64,000 nucleotides of DNA, taken from contig SMSO01000035.1 in assembly GCA_004764695.1 (NCBI GenBank), forward strand, positions 4,228,040-4,292,039, given 5' to 3'. The translations under genes were made by a program, and so were the position numbers. Of this stretch, positions 5,257 through 20,701 are shown piece by piece (the first letter of the stretch is position 1; each line of letters opens with the position of its first letter). The DNA comes from Schizochytrium sp. TIO01. Its lineage: Eukaryota > Protista > Bigyra: Labyrinthulomycetes. The notes beneath the pieces were generated by a model. That model was given only the letters and a program-made list of their open reading frames with translations. It had not been told where the DNA came from and did no database searches.

Positions 5257-5633
5257 GGCCTTTTGCCCAGACTTTGGCCATTCTCATGATCACCATGTCT
5301 GATGAAGCTCGATAGTAGTAGAAAAACTCTTCAACAATCAACCCGGTTCAAAGCCAGGTCTGTGTAAACGAATTGAATTTAACTCATTTTCCAAATTACA
5401 TTCTTTTCACATGATGGACAGCAAACGCACGCAACCTTTATCTCAACGATGACTATGAAAGAGGCTTTCCTACTCATTAAAAAAAAATGCTGTCTTCTCT
5501 CAATACTTGACCCTATCTACATTAAAAACTAGCTTGCTACGTAGGTGAAAGTTGCTATGAAAGCCTGAGAATAGAGCAATAATATTTCACTACTTCACTA
5601 TACTATATATTGTCCAAAAGACTCTGTGATCTC

Positions 5634-5669
5634 AGCTGATCCGAGTCTTCGCTGACTCAATATCCGCCA
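5634..5669 (+). ncRNA. 36-nt hairpin leader of tRNA copy 1
   Basis: AGCTGATCCGAGTC-TTCGCT-GACTCAATATCCGCCA; TATATAT at 5604 (-30). Confidence 0.55.
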
Positions 5670-5756
5670 GCCGGAATAGCACAGTGGCAGTTGCGACCGT
5701 CTCATAGAACAAACTAAGATAGCGGCAGGTCGTGAGTTCGATCCTCACTTCTGGCA
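5670..5756 (+). tRNA. tRNA-Met(CAT) elongator with 14-nt intron, copy 1
   Basis: Acceptor stem GCCGGAA/TTCTGGC, discriminator A, anticodon loop CT-CAT-A, intron GAACAAACTAAGAT after position 37, T-arm GTGAG-TTCGATC-CTCAC; 73 nt after splicing; T5 at 5761. G1-C72 and TTCG indicate elongator rather than initiator. Confidence 0.93.
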
Positions 5757-5830
5757 TTCATTTTTGGATTTTTTCCCTTCCTAAAAACTTGTGTATGTTG
5801 TATATATACGGCATTGAGATTTCATCTTTC

Positions 5831-5866
5831 AGCTGATCCGGGTCCTTACCGACTCATCATCCGCAA
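5831..5866 (+). ncRNA. 36-nt hairpin leader of tRNA copy 2
   Basis: AGCTGATCCGGGTC-CTTACC-GACTCATCATCCGCAA; TATATATA at 5801 (-30). Confidence 0.55.
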
Positions 5867-5953
5867 GCCGGAATAGCACAGTGGCAGTTGCGACCGTCTC
5901 ATAGAACAAACTAAGATAGCGGCAGGTCGTGAGTTCGATCCTCACTTCTGGCA
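5867..5953 (+). tRNA. tRNA-Met(CAT) with intron, copy 2
   Basis: Identical to copy 1; followed by an oligo-T run. Confidence 0.93.
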
Positions 5954-6256
5954 TTTATTTTTTCATCTTTACATGTAATCTTTTTTTTTGTTTGTGAAAA
6001 ATTAAACTAAAAGTTAACATTTACAATGATAATAATAGGAATAATAAGTAGCGAAAGGGGCTGATATATTATACTATTGTATTTTTCGTAGTTTTAGAAG
6101 AATCAATTTCATAATTAACTAAAATAAAAACTGAAAATTAATTAAACTTTAAATTTTAAGTAGAAACTGCAAATCTCTGCAAACTGACTTTTTTTTTCTC
6201 CAATCAATTGTGAACAGTTGTTGTAGGTCGCCGAGGAATTCGCTGCAACAAACCAT

Positions 6257-6342
6257 GCCGGAGTAGCACAGTGGCAGTTGCGACCGTCTCATAGAACAAA
6301 TTAGAAAGCGGCAGGTCGTGAGTTCGATCCTCACCTCTGGCA
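6257..6342 (+). tRNA. tRNA-Met(CAT) variant with 13-nt intron and no leader, copy 3
   Basis: Compensatory G7-C66 pair (GCCGGAG/CTCTGGC); intron GAACAAATTAGAA; T5 shortly downstream. Confidence 0.9.
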
Positions 6343-6469
6343 TAGATTCACTTTTTGTTGATCTGTGATTGCTGCACTCCTTTTTTAATTTAAAATGGAT
6401 GGTTCAGGTCAGTGCCTTGGCTGCATGTGAGAAGATACAAAGGGAGAATCCCTCGATTATCCAATCTAA

Positions 6470-6556
6470 GCCGGAACAATACAATGGCAGTTGCGATCGT
6501 CTCATAGAATAAACTAAGATAGCAGCAGGTCGTGAGTTTGTTCCCCGATTCTGGCA
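6470..6556 (+). pseudogene. Degenerate tRNA-Met(CAT), copy 4
   Basis: Same length as intact copies, but the A box (CAATACAATGG), B box/T-arm (GTGAGTTTGTTCCCCGA) and anticodon stem are disrupted; no leader. Confidence 0.85.
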
Positions 6557-6924
6557 AATGACTATTTTTTGTCGTGGTTGGTTATAGTCAGATGGGTTGG
6601 ACATGGAGATTTGCATCATTAACCTTTTTTTTTGTTTAAAAAAAAAAAAAAATTACATTCAAAAAAAGAAAAGAATAATTAGTTTTTATTCTTTCATGAG
6701 CGAAGTGCAGATTTCTAAACCGAGATCAAAACTACACGTGCGTGTTACCTTCTTTGTTAAAATATATCATCCCATATTCTTTTGTGTCACATCGCAGTTG
6801 TTTTCATATTTAATTATCTACTCTGGAAGGGGAAAAGAATGAGAGTCTTAAAAACGGAGGCTTGTTTTGCAAGAGCAGAAATTCACAACTTCATTTATTT
6901 ACTACCTTGGCCGCATCGTCTCTC

Positions 6925-6960
6925 AGCTGATTCGAGTCCTTAATGACTCATCGTCCGCCA
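6925..6960 (+). ncRNA. 36-nt hairpin leader of tRNA copy 5
   Basis: AGCTGATTCGAGTC-CTTAAT-GACTCATCGTCCGCCA; TTTATTTA at 6894 (-31). Confidence 0.55.
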
Positions 6961-7047
6961 GCCGGAATAGCACAGTGGCAGTTGCGACCGTCTCATAGAA
7001 CAAACTAAGATAGCGGCAGGTCGTGAGTTCGATCCTCACTTCTGGCA
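6961..7047 (+). tRNA. tRNA-Met(CAT) with intron, copy 5
   Basis: Identical to copy 1; oligo-T run follows. Confidence 0.93.
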
Positions 7048-7410
7048 ATTTAATTTTTTTAATGGTTGGTCATCATACCCCATCTCACACATGGTCATTT
7101 GTAAAACAAACCTTTTGTTGTTTCTTTTTTCACACAAAAAAGAGACCTATTTTGTTTTTATTCCTACATGAATAAAATGCATTTCTACACCGAGATCGAA
7201 ACCAACAGCTCGTTTTAACTTCTATATAGTTTCAATATGGTATCCTATTTTCTTCTTCGTCACATTACACTTGTTTTGATAATTAATTATCTACTTTGGA
7301 AGGGAATGTGAGTATCAAAAAATTAAAATTAATTTTAAAAATTCAAGTTTATTTTGTCAGGGCGGAATTTCACAACTTCATTTATTTACTACCTGGCCGC
7401 ATCGTCTCTC

Positions 7411-7446
7411 AGCTGATTCGAGTCTTCACTGACTCAACATCCGCCA
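7411..7446 (+). ncRNA. 36-nt hairpin leader of tRNA copy 6
   Basis: AGCTGATTCGAGTC-TTCACT-GACTCAACATCCGCCA; TTTATTTA at 7381 (-30). Confidence 0.55.
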
Positions 7447-7532
7447 GCCGGAATAGCACAGTGGCAGTTGCGACCGTCTCATAGAACAACTAAGATAGCG
7501 GCAGGTCGTGAGTTCGATCCTCACTTCTGGCA
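7447..7532 (+). tRNA. tRNA-Met(CAT) with 13-nt intron, copy 6
   Basis: Exons identical to copy 1; intron lacks one A. Confidence 0.92.
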
Positions 7533-7948
7533 ATTAATTTTTTTTGTTTTTGTATTTTGTTGCTGGATCAACATAGAAGGAAAAGGAGGTTGACACCTCT
7601 CTCCAAGTCTTCCACAAAGTTTGACTCCAAGTAGGTACCTAGGCATTTCTACTATAAGTGTTTTAAATATTGTGAAACGAGAAATTGGAAAACCAGCGCC
7701 AGGTATGCATTGCATTGCATTTCTTTATGAACTGTTGCAAACTCTGTACGTACTACTCCTTCGTTGCTGAGTTATACTGCTTTGCAGTTGTTTTTTTGAA
7801 TGCGGGGTTATCTTTTAAAAACAAATGAAAGGCTGGGAGTATGAGTTGTTTGCTCGGGAGACCAATCACAGGTCTGTGTTCATGCAGAATGCACTGAAGA
7901 TTATTTATCAAACTTCATTTATATGTGGCCTTGGCCGAATTGTCTCTC

Positions 7949-7984
7949 AGCTGATTCGAGTCTTCACTGACTCAACATCCGCCA
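7949..7984 (+). ncRNA. 36-nt hairpin leader of tRNA copy 7
   Basis: Same sequence as the copy 6 leader; TTTATAT at 7918 (-31). Confidence 0.55.
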
Positions 7985-8071
7985 GCCGGAATAGCACAGT
8001 GGCAGTTGCGACCGTCTCATAGAACAAACTAAGATAGCGGCAGGTCGTGAGTTCGATCCTCACTTCTGGCA
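7985..8071 (+). tRNA. tRNA-Met(CAT) with intron, copy 7
   Basis: Identical to copy 1; T6 follows. Confidence 0.93.
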
Positions 8072-8303
8072 TTCTTTTTTCAAAACTTTTTCAACTTTGG
8101 AATTCAATTTCTCAATTTTTACCTTTTTAGATATCGTAATATCCTATTTGTAACTTTGTAGGCGAGCACAACCGTAAGCACATGCAAATTTACAGCAATA
8201 CTTTGAAGTTGTTTGTTAGCAAACCACTGCAACACTCTCGAGTAGTTGTGCTTCCACCGAATTGCAGTAGACTCAGACTCTCCAGCAACCCTTTGGGTGA
8301 GAC

Positions 8304-10590
8304 TTGAGTATTGCTGCAATATCTTGCAAGCAGCGTTGGGATTTTATGTCAGCAAATCCTTTCTTTGTGATCGACAACATCTGCCAGATTGTTTGCCAAC
8401 CTCAATCATCAGAGTGTAGCTGCAAATCTTTTACCTATATTCATGATATTTTGAAGATGATCGATCATATTGAAGAAGAAAATAGTTACTAATCTCATCG
8501 TGCACGCATGCTTCAATAAAAGGACTTTACTCTCTAAGGTATACGTGAAGAACTTGAAAAGGAATGTGTGGATAGACAAGACGCTTCACATGGTCTAATT
8601 ATTGTTGATTGGAAGATGGCGCTTGTAAGTTTATCAGCTCGGGAGACAACGCAGAAGCACGTTGATAAGAGAGGATTCAGTTGGCACAGGACTCTTGTGG
8701 TGCTCTTGTGGTGCTCTTGTGGTGCTCTTGTGGTGCTTTTGTAATGTACTTCAGAAGACGGAAGGTCAAAGTATGATGCCAGATGGCTATCCTGGAGAGG
8801 AAATCGTTGCAGATCGTATGTAGGTTTTATCTCGGTCAAACTTTGCTTAGAAAAAAACAAGCGAACGACAGCTGTCGTAGCTTTGATGCTAAAATCTATC
8901 GTTATTTGAATGAAGACTGGGGTTCCATCATTGTAAATAACATATTTAAAAGTAATTATGATGGTTGTTGTTTTTCCTTACACCGATTCAGCTTCATTGT
9001 AATGCTCAATACGCGTTGACCTGATCAAAATCGAACAATATCTTCATTTTGAGACTCAATATGGAAAGTTGCCAGCATTGAGTCATGCTTCGCAACTGCA
9101 AGAAAAATGTGAAATCCTACATGAAGAGAAAATGAAAGAAGCCGTGCAAAACATGCCATGTCACCTACAGGATTTAAACGTGCTCTGGCGTGCTCTGGCG
9201 ATGTCCAACACTACAGTGTGCAGTTAATCGCCACGACTTACGAGACAATTCCTAGGCTAGATTGCACTCTTCGACTTACTGCAGATGCATCAAAAAGGCT
9301 AATGAAACGTTGTGATGCCACGTTTTTCAAATTTGACTAAAGCTCCAACTATTTCCAAACCTACGGAGGTGTTTTAGGCTGCACAAGATGACCGGAAGTT
9401 TCCGATTTGGGTACAATCCTACTTTAAATCAGCGATCCCTTCACTATTTCTTTTGCTCTTGGTAATAGACATTAATGAGGTGATCAAAGCTGTATGCCTC
9501 GCTCAAATTCTCCAGCATTTGCGAGTTTCCCACGTCTGGACGAGAAATTTAGAAATGTCGGTCCATACTGTGACCACGAGGTAGGTGTGATGGTAGAGAG
9601 TGATGACGAAAGAATGTCAGGAAATGACGAACAAAACGTTGCCACATATATTGAAAATTCGATAGATTACCTGATTGATAGCGAGACTCCTCCTCATACT
9701 CAAAATAGCCCATTTTAGCAAAAGATTCGCTGGGGTCATCAGTTGATTATGATGGAGAATCTGACCATTCCGGGTCCACTTTTGATGTAAGGTCTATTGA
9801 CAGCAATCAAATTGCTGAGTATTCTAATTTCCTGATGTTGCAATCGATACCCAGTTAAAAATTGATGTTCCAAGCAAAAGATACGAATATGCTCACTATA
9901 CCTCAATGGTAAATCCACCCTTACCGGTGTTAGGATAGTTACACTTCAAATTCTAAGGTCATCAAGGGCTCTATGCACGCATTAGAACCACAGGTTTCGC
10001 AAATCAGAGACCTCTGGTCCTTTCAAGGCTCTGATTCGCCATTATCTACAGCGAGAATTGGTTTTTCTATGCTGCATTCTCATAGTAAGATTAGTACTGA
10101 TCATACAGATATGTTCGACTACAAGTTTGCACAATCCACTACCGTCAAGTCAAGTGCACAGGGTTGGTGAGAAGACCTAAGAAGAGTAACGTATACGGCG
10201 GAGACTATGCGTTAATGCACTACAACGACATTAGAGTACGCTATAACAAAGACACAATCAATTCATCAGACGGGCTGGTGCCTTCTAATATGCTCGAAAG
10301 ACTCAAAGCCAAGCAGGGTAGGCAGTGCTCATACCCTAGCGTGTCGAACATCCACATGAGGGTTTCATTTCTGGTGAAGTTGTCTAAGCAGTCTGATTCC
10401 TGTGTCCTAATATTATCTTAAGATAATTTGGATCGATAAGTGAGGTTGCAAATCTAATGTTTTTTCTAAGTACAGGGCAAAGTAACTGAAACGTATATAA
10501 ATATTAAGAAAATGAAGCCGAGAAATTTGATTGCCAAGCTGATCAAAGACTTGCCAGAAACACAAATAAATCCGGAATCAAAGAGGAGTT
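8304..10590 (+). mobile_element. Decayed DNA-transposon transposase, Sola3-like; boundaries approximate, no TIRs found
   Basis: Across stops and frameshifts: SHRARMLQ (8493), GLIIVDWKMALVSLSARETTQKHVDKRGFSWH (8592-8687), KSNYDGCC (8948), LHFETQYGK then SIESCFATA (9042-9100), GW/VRRPKKSNVYGGDY...PSNMLERLK (about 10160-10310). Order and spacing match the DW.MK..RE..GKRGISWH / SDNAGCY / ETQ.GK..D motif series I recall for Sola3-type transposases. Confidence 0.7.
8692..8746 (+). repeat. 11-bp minisatellite (CTCTTGTGGTG)x4 plus one degenerate unit
   Basis: Direct tandem repeat inside the transposase relic. Confidence 0.9.
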
Positions 10591-11326
10591 AATATTGGAT
10601 AACGAGGTACTTCCCAGGCGTGAACACAGAAAAATATCAAATACATTTAACAACATTATTAATCCGAAGTTAATGGACATATTCATTGCGTGAGTAGACG
10701 TATTATCCACTGCTGCCTTGTTGCGGCTACTTTAAACTGATCTCATCCATGCGTTTCACCATTGTTTACAAACTTGAAAATCTGTTCTAAAGCCTCGTTG
10801 CGGCAGACACTTTGCCAAGCCCTGGAGACAAATACGATAGCGCCTTCCGTTCTAGTTCGTCGCATCTGCAGCGCACTGGAAATGTCTTATTAACCTTTCA
10901 AAGGGTCGCTTGCTAGGCAACATTCTTATTCATTCCGGAAGTCTCTGATCTTGCGACGATGTGCCACACACTATCATTTGCACTAAGCAACAAAAAATTT
11001 AACCCATCATGATGGTAGATTTTTAGTCCTTATAAATAAAAAAGTAAATAGTAAAAGAGAGAAAACAAAAAGTACGACATCTGCATCAATCGATCAATAT
11101 TCGATTTCTTAATGCACTAGCGAGACCTTATTACCTCATGAAAAATGTGTAGTAAATTTCAAATACGTTTTCTTAGTTTGAGATTTTCTTCTGCAATTTG
11201 TCCAGAGGTCTTACCTGTGGGGCACGCGTTAAAGTCTGTAGCTCTTGGTGTCGTTTGATGTAAAAAATGTGAAACGATGTTTTGCTGACTTTAAGTATAT
11301 ATATGTTCATAGCCGCTTCGTCTCTC

Positions 11327-11362
11327 AGCTGATTCGAGTCTTCGCTGACTCAACATCCGCCA
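11327..11362 (+). ncRNA. 36-nt hairpin leader of tRNA copy 8
   Basis: AGCTGATTCGAGTC-TTCGCT-GACTCAACATCCGCCA; TATATATA at 11296 (-31). Confidence 0.55.
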
Positions 11363-11449
11363 GCCGGAATAGCACAGTGGCAGTTGCGACCGTCTCATAG
11401 AACAAACTAAGATAGCGGCAGGTCGTGAGTTCGATCCTCACTTCTGGCA
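11363..11449 (+). tRNA. tRNA-Met(CAT) with intron, copy 8
   Basis: Identical to copy 1; oligo-T run follows. Confidence 0.93.
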
Positions 11450-11790
11450 TTTCTTTTTTTTCTCCTCGCTTTTTTTTTTCAATAAATGACTCAAATGCAA
11501 AAATTGTATATTAGTGTTTTGTCTTTGACGAGAGCTGCTTTTTGCTTAAAGAGCTGCTTCAGGAATAGATCACTTACGCTTATGGCCCTTGCTAGGTTTC
11601 AATGTATTTCTGCAGAATAAGGACACGGCTGATTTCAATTTCCTAAATCGGCTGCAGTCCAATATCTGGGATGGAAAATCATTCGCTCGGTTATTATATG
11701 GATAGATAGATAGTTCGATCAGAAAACATGCGACAACAAAAAATAAATATTTTATCCATAGTTATATACGCATGAGGGCTCTTCACTTTC

Positions 11791-11826
11791 AGCTGATTCG
11801 AGTCCTTACCGACTCATCGTCCGCAA
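11791..11826 (+). ncRNA. 36-nt hairpin leader of tRNA copy 9
   Basis: AGCTGATTCGAGTC-CTTACC-GACTCATCGTCCGCAA; TTATATA at 11762 (-29). Confidence 0.55.
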
Positions 11827-11913
11827 GCCGGAATAGCACAGTGGCAGTTGCGACCGTCTCATAGAACAAACTAAGATAGCGGCAGGTCGTGAGTTCGATC
11901 CTCACTTCTGGCA
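11827..11913 (+). tRNA. tRNA-Met(CAT) with intron, copy 9
   Basis: Identical to copy 1; oligo-T run follows. Confidence 0.93.
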
Positions 11914-12470
11914 TTTCTTTTTTTATTTCTTTTTCATATTTATAATTTAACCACTTCGTTACCTTAACACTCTCACGAGCCCGAGGGAATGAGGTTTTAT
12001 TTTTATAAAAACTTGATTAAAACTCAATCAAAACAATCAAACACTGATACTACAATGACAGACCAAGTTGCAGATCATCTTTAAAAAACCAGTTCCCCTC
12101 CCCCACTGTTTATGTATGTGACAACCTAATCTCTCATGGCTTGACTGACAACCTCAATGTCACAATCTGATTGTATTCTTCCGTTTTATTATTATTTTAC
12201 TTGTACTTAAAGCTTGGCATTGTATAAGGAAAGCCCTTCGTAGGTGCACAGGGGTCAGGATCACTAAAATTTTCCAAAGCAAAACGGGTTTTCTGTGAGT
12301 TCTGCCCAAAAGGTACATTTTAACTCATCGCCTCTGTACTTCTGAGTAGTGAGAGTGAAGGGTTTTCAAACAATTTGTTATTGATACCTATAGCCAAAGA
12401 CAGACTCGAGTTTTTAAGTACACAAAACTGTAGAGTAGGTTTATATATGGCATTAGCTTGCGGAAGTATC

Positions 12471-12506
12471 AGCTGATTCGAGTCCTTACCGACTCATCAT
12501 CCGCCA
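12471..12506 (+). ncRNA. 36-nt hairpin leader of tRNA copy 10
   Basis: AGCTGATTCGAGTC-CTTACC-GACTCATCATCCGCCA; TTATATAT at 12441 (-30). Confidence 0.55.
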
Positions 12507-12593
12507 GCCGGAATAGCACAGTGGCAGTTGCGACCGTCTCATAGAACAAACTAAGATAGCGGCAGGTCGTGAGTTCGATCCTCACTTCTGGCA
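12507..12593 (+). tRNA. tRNA-Met(CAT) with intron, copy 10
   Basis: Identical to copy 1; oligo-T run follows. Confidence 0.93.
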
Positions 12594-13204
12594 TTTCTTT
12601 TTCAATTTTTTTTTACAAAATTATTATTATTTTTTTTTTCCCTCCTATCTATCCAATGAAGGCCAAGCAACTTGAAGTTTAGTCAATAAGTTGAGTTTGG
12701 GTCAACAATGATAGTTTTGATGGGCTTGACCCGATCATGATACCGAAGAACCGATGAGGTTTGCGTGTATCTATCTAGGCAGCCTTGGTTTCTTTAACTT
12801 CACAAATGTGATTCTCTGTTATTCGCAATCTAAATCTGGTACTGCCTATTTTAAGTAAAAAGAAAGAAACCAGAAGAATAACGTAAGTATGAAGGCCTGT
12901 GGATGCACCAGCCAACTTGATGTTTTTGGGCTTTAGCAAATTAGGTTTGCAACTTTGTGTTTGTGAAGGAACTTGTGTTTAGAAGCGTTGTGCCGAATGC
13001 GAGAGTAACGTTCTCAGCAGGGTTGCTAGACTTGGGTTGGGGATAAGGATAACTGATTTGGTCAATATCTGTGCCATATCGATATATTATTTCTAAGAAA
13101 ATGTCTTGGAGGTTTGAGCTTTGACGCCTCAGACAACAGAAGGATAATCCTCAAGCGCTGGCACGTGAGACCTTGCAGTCCCGTTTGCCAGCGGCCAGAT
13201 CGCA

Positions 13205-16290: not shown

Positions 16291-18012
16291 CTAGCTGGCA
16301 GATGTCTTTGGAACGACAATGTCGGAGCGAGCCTTGGGGACGAGCCAAAGGTTGTGTGTAGATTGATCAGAGGAGTTGCATAGGCCCATAGTAAGTCCGA
16401 TTGTAGGGCATATGACGTTCGGGTCCTCATTTGACTCTAAAGTAAAAGAAAAATTCTGCAAAAGCGTTGCGGCCAAAAGCTTTGCTTCGAATTTTGCCAT
16501 ATCCTTACCAAGGCAGCTACGATTTGCAGCCTGAAATACAGGGAAGGCAAATGCATCAGGCTCAACAAATGGGATCCAGCGCTCCGGATCAAATTTCATA
16601 GGATCTGGATAGTATGCAGGATTGCGGCCCATTGCATAAGGAGAATACACGAATCGAGTGCCGGCAGGGAATTCTGTGCCATCAGGAAAGCAAAGGTCCT
16701 TCTGTGCGATTTTAACATTTTGGGGCACTGCAGGGTGTAGTCGCATGGCTTCATAGAGACAGCCATTCAAGTATGGTAGGTTGTATACCACTTCTTCGTA
16801 GGTCGGGGATTGGCCATTGAGGGTGTCGAGTTCCTCTAAGAGCTTTTGTTGAACTTGAGGGTTGATTGAGAGCTCATAAAATAACCAAGTAAGCGTGCAT
16901 GCTGTGGTATCGCGGCCTGCGATTACAAAATTGAGGACGATAGCAACAAGTTCCTCATCTGTCCAAGAAACGGCCTTAGAAGGGTCTTTGCTGAAGCGGG
17001 TGTCGCTTTTCAGAATGTTCGAGATTAAGTCTTCCCGGTTTTCGCGATCAGTTACAGCACGCAAGCGGGCAACCTTTTCGTACGTCATTCGGTGAAGGTC
17101 AGATATATGGCGCTCAAAGCTCTGATACTCCTTGCTTCTTTTCTGAAGAAGCTTCATGCAAAGACTTGTCGAAAAGTCATAAAAGAGAGGGCCAAAGGGG
17201 AAGGGCAGGCAAGCGATGGCAAGAAGTGCAGGCGTTTCACCCCAGTAAAATTGCAACATGGAGCGGTGTGCACCGTCGAAGGCGATAGAAACAGCCTCAC
17301 AGTCCTCCTTTGATGCTTCCTCATCCCCAAAAAGGATTTCTTGGATCGATTCAAACGTAAATGTGAAGAACTCCTTTTGCATGTCTATTGGAGTCGCCCC
17401 CTTGGTCTTATCGCACGTGTTCTGAGCAGAGTTCTTTTCTGCAATCGGGCGCAAAGCTTCAACCATAGATTTAGCATGGCGCTGAAATACGGCAAACATC
17501 ATATTGGAGAATTTTGCCCGAGTAAAAATCAACGCAGCAGCTTTCCGCTGCCGATACCAACGGTCGTGCTCATCAGGGTGCATATCACCATGGCGAAGAA
17601 CAAAAATTGAATGCCCAATAAATTTGCGCATTAATCCGAAAAGCCTGTCATCAGGACCAGGTTTGGTTGCATTAGCGAACTCATCCTTTAGCATAAACTT
17701 GATTGCCTTTGGAGAGTTAAAGACAACTTCAAAACCTGGCATTTGCCATTTGACGAGATCTGCATCTCCATAGGGCAGAACCTCGTTGGCGGAAAAGTCG
17801 AAGAAGTGATTGAAGTTCTTGGCAACCTCCTTGCCACTCCAATCCGTGGGTTTTCCGGGAAGGTTTTTGGTGGCTCTCTTGAATCTTATCATCATCCGTA
17901 GAAAGAGAAAGCCCTTTACAGACATTTGTATAATCACAAAAGCCGCATACGCTTTAAGTAAAGTTTTGACCTTGTTGACTCCCTCGAGTCGGCTCAGGAC
18001 TGATTGCCCCAT
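16291..18012 (-). CDS. Cytochrome P450, CYP86 clan (CYP704-like), paralog 1
   Basis: N-terminal membrane anchor, WYRQRK, I-helix NFVIAGRDTTA, EAMRLHP, PERW, heme loop FQAANRSCLG. Confidence 0.93.
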   Translation of the reverse strand: MGQSVLSRLEGVNKVKTLLKAYAAFVIIQMSVKGFLFLRMMIRFKRATKNLPGKPTDWSGKEVAKNFNHFFDFSANEVLPYGDADLVKWQMPGFEVVFNSPKAIKFMLKDEFANATKPGPDDRLFGLMRKFIGHSIFVLRHGDMHPDEHDRWYRQRKAAALIFTRAKFSNMMFAVFQRHAKSMVEALRPIAEKNSAQNTCDKTKGATPIDMQKEFFTFTFESIQEILFGDEEASKEDCEAVSIAFDGAHRSMLQFYWGETPALLAIACLPFPFGPLFYDFSTSLCMKLLQKRSKEYQSFERHISDLHRMTYEKVARLRAVTDRENREDLISNILKSDTRFSKDPSKAVSWTDEELVAIVLNFVIAGRDTTACTLTWLFYELSINPQVQQKLLEELDTLNGQSPTYEEVVYNLPYLNGCLYEAMRLHPAVPQNVKIAQKDLCFPDGTEFPAGTRFVYSPYAMGRNPAYYPDPMKFDPERWIPFVEPDAFAFPVFQAANRSCLGKDMAKFEAKLLAATLLQNFSFTLESNEDPNVICPTIGLTMGLCNSSDQSTHNLWLVPKARSDIVVPKTSAS

Positions 18013-18979: not shown

Positions 18980-20701
18980 TTAATTAGACACCTCTCGAAG
19001 ACGAGGTACCAGCCAAAGTTTGTGTGAGGACTGGTCAGATGAGTTGCAAAGGCTCATAGTAAGCGCAACGGTGGGGCAAATCACGTTAGGATCCTCGTTG
19101 GCTTCAAGGTCAAACGTAAACTTTTGCAAGAGCATTGCAGTGAGTAGTTTGGCCTCGAACTTGGCCATATCGCGACCCAGACAGCTTCGGTACGCGGCCT
19201 GGAATACTGGGAACTCAAAAGGGTCCGGCTCTGTAAAGGGAATCCAACGTTCAGGTTTGAACTTGAGGGCATCCGGATAGCGCTCTTCGTCGCGACCCAT
19301 AGAGTAGGGATGAAAGATAAGGCGACTGCCCTTGGGAATCTTTGTGCCATCGAGGTATTCTAAGTCTTTGGTGGCAAGTTTGATATCTTGGGGAACTGGG
19401 GGATGCATTCGCAGAGTCTCGAAAAGACAGCCATTTAAGTATGGCATGCCATTGACAATCTCTTCATACGTAGGAGAGCGGTCTCCAAGAGTATCAATTT
19501 CAGCTTGCAGCTTTTCTTGCACGTCCTTATTCACGGATAGCTCGTAAAAGAGCCATGTCAAAGTACAGGCTGTGGTGTCCCGCCCTGCAATAATGAAGTT
19601 TAACACAATTGCGAGAAGTTCCTCATCGGTCCATCCGATGCTTTCACTTTGGCCATTCTTTGCAGCAAAGCTCTTGTCATGATTAATGAAATTCGAAATA
19701 AGATCCTTGCGATCAGCAAGATTAGGGTCGCTTCGGAGCTGTTGAACTTTCTCACGAGTAATGCGGTGCAGATTGTTTCTATGAAAGGAAAACTCACGAT
19801 GATCTGGGTGTACCAGACGTAAGATCTGATAGCATGGGCTAGTCCAAAGACGATCAGAGCGCAGGGCGCCAAACGGGAAAGGGAGGATCTGTAATAAGAG
19901 CAGCAACGGCGCTTGCTTGATGATGCAACGCATCATGGCACGGTGCGTGCCATCGAAGGCGATGGCTGCATCATCGCGATCGCGACCACTTACGGTGTCA
20001 ACGTCATCCCCAAAGAATATTTTTTGGATAGAGTCAAAGGTGAATGCAAAGAATTTTTCTTGCATGTCCACCGCGACTGCTCCTTTATATTTGTCGTTTG
20101 TTTTCATTTTCGCATTTTCTTTGGCCGCGTTCTCTAAAGTCTTCAACATGATACGCGCTTTTGCTTCAAACACACCAAACATCATGTTTGAAAACTTTGA
20201 CTTGGTAAAAATGAGCGCAGCAGCCTTGCGCTGGCGGTACCAGCGGTTATGATCTCCAGGGTTCTCTTCGCCATGACGCAAGGTAAATATAGAATCTCCA
20301 ATGAATTCTTTGAGGAGAACAAACAATTCGTCTTCGTCGCCTGTTTTGGTAATGTGTGCAAATTCATCTTTGAGCATAAACTTCACAGCGGGCGGAGAGA
20401 GAAAAAGAATCTCGCGCATGTTTCCTTGCCATACGATGAGGTCTTCGCGCTGATGAGGTTTTACTGTCTCTGCGCAAAACTCCGTGAATCGAGGAAAGTT
20501 GTGAGCAAGCTCAATGCCTGACCAGCTAAAGAGGCTACCGCTAAGATGAGCAGTTGCCTTTCTAAAACGCAAGTACAAGCGTGCAAAGATGGCCAGCTTT
20601 ATCGCCATGTGCAGACCAGCCAAAACAGCATAGATCCCGAAGATTCTCCGAGCAAGCTGTTTATTTGGACTTGAAGCGATCTTGGTACTGATAGCTCCCA
20701 T
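18980..20701 (-). CDS. Cytochrome P450, CYP86 clan (CYP704-like), paralog 2
   Basis: NFIIAGRDTTA, ETLRMHP, PERW, FQAAYRSCLG; clear tandem paralog of 16291..18012. Confidence 0.93.
   Translation of the reverse strand: MGAISTKIASSPNKQLARRIFGIYAVLAGLHMAIKLAIFARLYLRFRKATAHLSGSLFSWSGIELAHNFPRFTEFCAETVKPHQREDLIVWQGNMREILFLSPPAVKFMLKDEFAHITKTGDEDELFVLLKEFIGDSIFTLRHGEENPGDHNRWYRQRKAAALIFTKSKFSNMMFGVFEAKARIMLKTLENAAKENAKMKTNDKYKGAVAVDMQEKFFAFTFDSIQKIFFGDDVDTVSGRDRDDAAIAFDGTHRAMMRCIIKQAPLLLLLQILPFPFGALRSDRLWTSPCYQILRLVHPDHREFSFHRNNLHRITREKVQQLRSDPNLADRKDLISNFINHDKSFAAKNGQSESIGWTDEELLAIVLNFIIAGRDTTACTLTWLFYELSVNKDVQEKLQAEIDTLGDRSPTYEEIVNGMPYLNGCLFETLRMHPPVPQDIKLATKDLEYLDGTKIPKGSRLIFHPYSMGRDEERYPDALKFKPERWIPFTEPDPFEFPVFQAAYRSCLGRDMAKFEAKLLTAMLLQKFTFDLEANEDPNVICPTVALTMSLCNSSDQSSHKLWLVPRLREVSN

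Follow-up and report, generated by a model that had tools for sequence, protein, structure and literature searches.

Pre-tRNA leaders in eukaryotes are ordinarily short and unconserved, and at the TATA-dependent tRNA genes of fission yeast and plants RNA polymerase III (Pol III) starts transcription a few nucleotides (nt) before the tRNA. A cluster of tRNA-Met genes in the thraustochytrid Schizochytrium sp. TIO01 presents another arrangement. Within the window, by which we mean the whole stretch of 64,000 nt of contig SMSO01000035.1 that was analyzed, eight of ten elongator tRNA-Met(CAT) genes are joined at their 5′ ends to a conserved block of 36 nt, and this block is most likely, judging from its sequence and setting, a long pre-tRNA leader that is conserved and forms a hairpin, rather than a second gene. 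Like an ordinary leader of a Pol III type 2 gene, it lies between the predicted start of transcription and position +1 of the tRNA, would be expected to be removed by ribonuclease P (RNase P), and has the tRNA and then a T-run terminator downstream of it; unlike an ordinary leader, it is 36 nt long, is 87% identical between old paralogues, and is predicted to be folded. With Pol III genes that depend on TATA (the 5S and tRNA genes of fission yeast, the tRNA genes of plants, and U6) it shares a TATA box about 30 nt upstream of the start, but the start predicted for the Met genes is 36 nt before the tRNA, in contrast to that of the yeast and plant tRNA genes. The dicistronic Pol III units, such as plant tRNA-snoRNA and yeast tRNA-Arg/tRNA-Asp, offer a further comparison in that one transcript carries two structured modules that are split by tRNA-processing enzymes. 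Those units pair two recognizable RNA genes, however, whereas the upstream module of the Met genes matches no family at threshold and never occurs alone. Synthetic hairpin leaders that gate RNase P also place a hairpin directly upstream of the tRNA with few free nucleotides at the cleavage site, but they are engineered and ligand-controlled (PMC8925977), while no ligand or switch is evident for the Met leader. The same paper describes no natural eukaryotic counterpart, and in the literature no publication was found on thraustochytrid tRNA leaders or Pol III promoters, nor on leaders of this kind.

The genome that served as the source for all genome-wide searches comprises 64 Mb in 37 contigs, and a DNA search of the whole of it found the 10 intron-containing tRNA-Met genes of the window, which lie on the + strand at 5670–12593, to be the sole copies. 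The anticodon CAT, the T loop TTCGATC, and the G1:C72 pair assign them to the elongator type by sequence and by the Rfam alignment. Their RF00005 scores are 40.7–40.9 bits against a cut-off of 29; the Rfam filters listed four copies, and the remaining ones are identical or near-identical to these in sequence. ARAGORN in its default mode missed the tRNA-Met copies because of the intron, which follows position 37 and is 14 nt long (13 nt in copies 3 and 6). Seven copies are identical at 87 of 87 nt, intron included, and copy 6 has an intron one A shorter. Copy 3 is an intact variant with G7:C66 and a different 13-nt intron (RF00005, 40.9 bits); its upstream sequence is unrelated to the 36-nt block and has no TATA at −66. 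Copy 4 is degenerate, with 86% identity to the other copies, damaged D and T arms, no leader block, and no TATA. A tRNA-derived mobile element resembling a short interspersed element was considered for the cluster and is not supported, as all 10 copies lie in a single 7-kb cluster, extra conserved sequence is present upstream, and the trailers are unconserved.

The sequence-only reading that prompted this analysis had placed a 36-nt pattern before copies 1, 2, and 5–10 with zero spacer, and both observations held. The pattern has eight matches without a mismatch in the window and none in 100 shuffles, and every match abuts the first base of a tRNA. Elsewhere in the genome the block is absent, whether it is sought by a pattern search allowing up to two mismatches or by a covariance model trained on the eight leaders, which returned only those eight, all fused to a tRNA. 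That reading recognized no known family in the block, and the Rfam search agrees, with no family at threshold and only a chance-level overlap with sR41 on the opposite strand (E of about 4–5; 15 bits against a cut-off of 54). Read from 5′ to 3′, each unit would consist of a TATA box, a variable spacer of 22 nt, a start site at the first A of AGCTGA, the 36-nt leader, the tRNA-Met with its intron, and a T-run as terminator, which at all eight leader-bearing genes consists of 5–8 T and lies 4–7 nt 3′ of the tRNA. The features are as follows, with the leaders placed by pattern, alignment, and fold (by pattern and alignment for copy 7).

5604–5611 (+): TATA box of copy 1 (TATATATT), 30 nt 5′ of the leader start, a spacing as at 5S and U6
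5634–5669 (+): leader of copy 1, 36 nt, loop TTCGCT
5670–5756 (+): tRNA-Met(CAT) copy 1, intron 5707–5720, T-run 5761–5765, RF00005 40.7 bits
5801–5808 (+): TATA box of copy 2 (TATATATA)
5831–5866 (+): leader of copy 2, 36 nt, loop CTTACC, G11 in a G-U pair
5867–5953 (+): tRNA-Met(CAT) copy 2, intron 5904–5917, T-run 5958–5963
6257–6342 (+): tRNA-Met(CAT) copy 3, the variant
6470–6556 (+): tRNA-Met copy 4, degenerate
6895–6902 (+): TATA-like box of copy 5 (TTATTTAC)
6925–6960 (+): leader of copy 5, 36 nt, loop CTTAAT, G29 in a U-G pair
6961–7047 (+): tRNA-Met(CAT) copy 5, intron 6998–7011, T-run 7054–7060
7381–7388 (+): TATA-like box of copy 6 (TTTATTTA)
7411–7446 (+): leader of copy 6, 36 nt, loop TTCACT
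7447–7532 (+): tRNA-Met(CAT) copy 6, intron 7484–7496, T-run 7538–7545
7919–7926 (+): TATA box of copy 7 (TTATATGT)
7949–7984 (+): leader of copy 7, 36 nt, same sequence as that of copy 6
7985–8071 (+): tRNA-Met(CAT) copy 7, intron 8022–8035, T-run 8075–8080
11297–11304 (+): TATA box of copy 8 (ATATATAT)
11327–11362 (+): leader of copy 8, 36 nt, loop TTCGCT
11363–11449 (+): tRNA-Met(CAT) copy 8, intron 11400–11413, T-run 11454–11461
11761–11768 (+): TATA box of copy 9 (GTTATATA)
11791–11826 (+): leader of copy 9, 36 nt, loop CTTACC, G29 in a U-G pair
11827–11913 (+): tRNA-Met(CAT) copy 9, intron 11864–11877, T-run 11918–11924
12441–12448 (+): TATA box of copy 10 (TTATATAT)
12471–12506 (+): leader of copy 10, 36 nt, loop CTTACC
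12507–12593 (+): tRNA-Met(CAT) copy 10, intron 12544–12557, T-run 12598–12602

The position of the TATA boxes suggests that the block is transcribed. In all eight genes a TATA 8-mer is found at −30 to −23 relative to the first A of the leader, within 1–2 nt. The calibration of this spacing came from genes of the same genome at which Pol III starts at the mature 5′ end, namely the one U6 gene and eight 5S rRNA genes; in each of them a TATA 8-mer is followed after 21–23 nt by the known 5′ end. The TATA-to-block spacing is the same as that at 5S and U6, so the block is most likely a transcribed pre-tRNA leader that starts at its first A, and all eight genes have the look of single Pol III units with their start at that base. 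The predicted start falls at a pyrimidine-purine step (TC|A), and TATA is missing at the corresponding position in copies 3 and 4. The 5S rRNA genes are themselves dispersed over at least 47 places on many contigs (e.g., L039–L046), and all eight copies that were fetched have their own TATA 21–22 nt before the mature 5′ end.

The conservation profile has its boundary at the same base. Mean pairwise identity among the copies is 0.28–0.31 at 60–125 nt upstream of the tRNA, 0.44 at the position of TATA, and 0.40–0.48 in the 22-nt spacer; it then rises abruptly at the first base of the leader to 0.87, reaches 1.00 in the tRNA with its intron, and falls to 0.54 in the T-rich trailer. Identity in the flanks does not exceed background, which indicates that the copies are old, and by this alignment just the leader and the tRNA are held constant between old copies. 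The earlier description of the sequence 5′ of the first A as far more variable stands for the spacer as a whole, although T(−40), T(−38), and C(−37), numbered from the tRNA, are also invariant.

Folding of the block supports its description as one hairpin, since all eight leaders have the same minimum-energy structure,.((.(((..(((((......)))))...))).)).., at −8.5 to −9.9 kcal/mol and with z scores of −1.4 to −3.5 against dinucleotide shuffles. When the whole precursor of copy 7 is folded, the leader makes its hairpin separately from the tRNA. The hairpins that can be drawn before copies 3 and 4 reach z scores of −0.1 to −1.0 and are no better than shuffles. Eleven of the 36 columns vary among the eight leaders; nine of them belong to the 16 unpaired columns and two to the 20 paired columns (Fisher p = 0.004, for related paralogues). 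The two stem changes, at column 11 in copy 2 and at column 29 in copies 5 and 9, are both A-to-G opposite U, and all 70 pair cells are still standard pairs; the claim that differences between copies fall in the loop, the internal loop, or the tail, or else keep a G-U pair, was thus accurate. The leaders divide into two loop types, one with TTCRCT followed by AYA in the internal loop (copies 1, 6, 7, and 8) and one with CTTAMY followed by TCR (copies 2, 5, 9, and 10), and the fixed differences between the two types are at unpaired positions exclusively. Taken on its sequence, the leader hairpin appears to be under selection.

Two further ideas about the fold were tried. The leader was compared with the top half of a tRNA, an acceptor stem and T arm ending in CCA, and this was rejected as the stack is interrupted by a bulge of 3 nt on the 3′ strand, the loop numbers 6 nt instead of 7, its sequence in half of the copies does not resemble that of a T loop, and CAA stands at the end of two copies. 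Any pairing of the leader loop with the intron is limited to 4 base pairs, no more than chance would give.

The reading that we favor, and that we consider probable though well short of assured, is that of a structured pre-tRNA leader on single Pol III units whose hairpin is kept by selection at the RNA level and acts on its own transcript. This agrees best with the second option of the sequence-only reading, a leader that controls how tRNA-Met is processed. In this scheme Pol III would start at A1 and the leader would fold during transcription into a self-contained hairpin of two stems, which would leave positions −2 and −1 (C or A, then A) alone single-stranded before the cleavage site. RNase P or PRORP would then cut at +1 and remove the leader. 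The hairpin might prevent a leader of this length from base-pairing with the body of the tRNA, or it might set the rate or the order of 5′ processing. Pairing of position −1 with the discriminator at position 73 is reported to cause miscleavage (PMC8925977). The A at −1 of the Met leaders is unable to pair with the discriminator A73, and the cleavage site therefore looks usable. Cleavage by RNase P of the bacterial, plant protein-only, and human nuclear kinds is lowered when a hairpin masks the nucleotides that precede the site, and PRORP requires just about 3 free nt (PMC8925977); with two free nt before the site, the Met hairpin could plausibly modulate processing. As for the enzyme itself, a single PRORP match was found (80.9 bits, in an open reading frame of 799 amino acids; G000:C31:5112035–5112700, − strand, locus L047). 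The RNA of nuclear RNase P (RF00009) was not detected in a weak search in which 15 candidates were scored and the controls did not respond.

Leaders of other tRNA families in the same genome put the Met leaders in perspective. About 110 further tRNA genes were examined, with TATA scored by a matrix made from the 5S and U6 boxes. The leaders predicted in this way are about 10–12 nt long for most Glu-CTC genes, 9–12 nt for Pro-CGG, and 13 nt for Gly-GCC (one scorable gene), and they are 34–37 nt long for Met, 45–49 nt for Lys-CTT, and about 25–36 nt for most Val-GAC genes. The short leaders of Glu, Pro, and Gly indicate that long leaders are not imposed by Pol III geometry but are specific to families. 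The predicted leaders of Val-GAC, Asn, Lys-CTT, and Met fold with a mean z of −1.46, in comparison to −0.14 for same-length controls upstream of TATA, a comparison that is indicative because copies within a family are not independent; the Met leaders are the most extreme of these four families (z of −2.5). Val-GAC leaders have a common start (AACCAGCAG) and hairpins of differing sequence at the same place. The Lys-CTT leaders have GGAGC/GCTCT in an array, as opposed to GTAGC/GCTAC in dispersed copies, and they are a close parallel within the genome, with a TATA box, a variable spacer, and a conserved hairpin leader specific to the family. Their sequence, length, and shape differ from those of the Met leaders, which have 36 nt and two stems and belong to one cluster of intron-containing genes. 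Conservation within clusters extends to short leaders, as in Pro (CATTCAAT) and Glu (CATCTCCTAAAATC). It may be that the leader hairpins of Met, Lys, and Val are handles by which a trans-acting factor or RNase P controls the maturation of tRNA families separately, or that the 36-nt hairpins, released with a 5′ triphosphate, have a function of their own, although we regard this broader proposal as rather improbable.

Several other tRNA genes came to light in the course of this comparison. An array of 19 tRNA-Glu(CTC) genes, spaced at about 180 bp and arranged in blocks of opposite orientation (L054, G000:C4:1180400–1187000), has CATCTCCTAAAATC as its common leader. By ARAGORN there are two tRNA-Val families with the anticodon GAC (L020–L026, L034), one of them dispersed over several contigs; in the eukaryotic nucleus AAC is the usual Val anticodon and GAC is unusual. 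A group of tRNA-like genes that start with GTTGCGGTG (L055, L063, L066, and L068) received inconsistent identities from ARAGORN (Pyl-CTA, Ser-GCT, Lys-CTT, and Glu-CTC), and these are probably intron-containing or long-arm tRNAs.

Three other explanations must be weighed against a leader that is selected as RNA. The block had been put forward as a separate small-RNA gene in a dicistron, such that RNase P would free a stable 36-nt 5′-triphosphate hairpin that acts elsewhere. The exact bounding of the block by the predicted start and the RNase P site, together with its compact fold, would suit such a product, and bacteria offer precedents in which a by-product of tRNA processing has a function of its own, for example the leuZ 3′ external spacer of E. 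coli. Yet no Rfam family is found at threshold, neither the pattern search nor the covariance-model search finds a stand-alone copy anywhere in the genome, and the loop, which is the obvious place for pairing with a target, varies more than any other part and has four versions among the eight copies. Every tRNA family would also need an unrelated small RNA of its own, and the different leaders of the other families fit parts of precursors better than many unrelated small-RNA genes. The claim of a dicistron was not upheld, and we give a true dicistron of this kind only a slim chance; of the proposal that the block is a selected hairpin RNA, the selected hairpin is consistent with the avoidance of stems by variable sites while the independence of the RNA is not retained. 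The least probable of the explanations, in our view, is that the conserved element is DNA, a nested palindrome of GAGTC-N6-GACTC within GCTGAT...ATCCGC that would serve as the site of a dimeric factor or as a promoter-proximal Pol III element. Conserved inverted repeats around a variable spacer are the usual look of a dimer site, and the block does lie between the TATA box and the internal A box. However, both stem substitutions break the symmetry of the DNA and yet keep G-U pairs on the transcribed strand, the motif is found nowhere else in the 64 Mb, and hairpins of unrelated sequence at the same place in other tRNA families point to an RNA fold and not to one shared factor.

Concerted evolution without a function of the RNA is the likeliest of the three, and although we think it unlikely as the whole explanation, gene conversion surely contributes to the similarity of the copies. 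In this account the leader and tRNA are homogenized by gene conversion or unequal exchange, possibly linked to transcription, and the hairpin is incidental. Several observations favor it and count against selection on a leader RNA: all copies lie within 7 kb on one strand, and the variants are mosaic, with C8 common to copies 1 and 2, neighbors that differ in loop type. The presence of C8 in both loop types points to exchange between copies. A35 is likewise common to copies 2 and 9, seven copies agree at 100% in tRNA and intron, and the short leaders of Pro and Glu are conserved within their clusters too. Covariation in the aligned leaders, which would have been a mark of a selected fold, is not seen, as none of the 10 pairs has changed on both sides and the two one-sided changes stay as G-U. 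It also counts against the favored reading that the test of loop against stem is based on 11 columns in related paralogues, that the comparison between genomes is limited to strains about 1.5% divergent, that start site, hairpin, and cleavage alike have the status of predictions, and that a hairpin with two free nt before the cleavage site could equally hinder RNase P (PMC8925977). Conversion on its own does not explain why the boundary of the block coincides exactly with the TATA-predicted start in five independent upstream contexts, nor why the variable columns avoid the stems and the 3′ trailer is not homogenized. In addition, the first 7 nt of the leader, those farthest from the tRNA, are invariant, which argues against simple edge erosion of a gene-conversion tract.

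The strain comparison mentioned above used contigs from four DNA runs, about 1.5% divergent, over 5560–11500, and these contigs break at repeats. Among the differences listed, none is in any leader or intact tRNA, a result with almost no power given that about 1.6 would be expected in the leaders; two are in the 36 nt upstream of copy 3 (6223 and 6234) and three in copy 4 (6487, 6532, and 6547). Scans of metagenomes with tRNA-Met patterns gave one empty result and one that consisted of two unrelated bacterial-type tRNAs, a scan of viral contigs found no match, and no look-alike stretches were found in other genomes.

Eukaryotic leaders are regarded as short, disposable, and unconstrained, and the Met leader would depart from this picture with three times the usual length and with conservation that extends exactly to the predicted start. 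If the structured-leader reading is true, thraustochytrids would be a natural system for studying how leader structure relates to cleavage by RNase P or PRORP, to tRNA folding, and to the supply of tRNA by family. Were the hairpins handles for separate control of tRNA families, they would represent a layer of tRNA-pool regulation that has not been described in eukaryotes. There is a practical side as well, since short RNAs are already being expressed from tRNA promoters in Schizochytrium (PMC13731073), and the true start site and leader determine the actual products of such constructs. In the size-selected small-RNA sequencing of Schizochytrium sp. in that study, mature sequences were the sole mapping target.

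Some observations from the rest of the window complete the description. A tandem repeat of 11 nt (GTGGTGCTCTT, about 4 copies) occupies 8690–8745, and one related strain has a contig that skips 33 nt there; on this contig evidence strains differ in their number of repeats. All four related strains have loose ends at 10671, 10733, and 10857, which suggests that, relative to these strains, this assembly has an insertion or rearrangement at 10671–10857. A neighboring DnaJ protein has its closest named relative in the thraustochytrid Hondaea fermentalgiana. Farther along, tandem open reading frames of 573 amino acids are located at 16291–18012 and 18980–20701 on the − strand; the one at 16291–18012, which was the one scanned, is a cytochrome P450, and the pair is probably a recent duplication.

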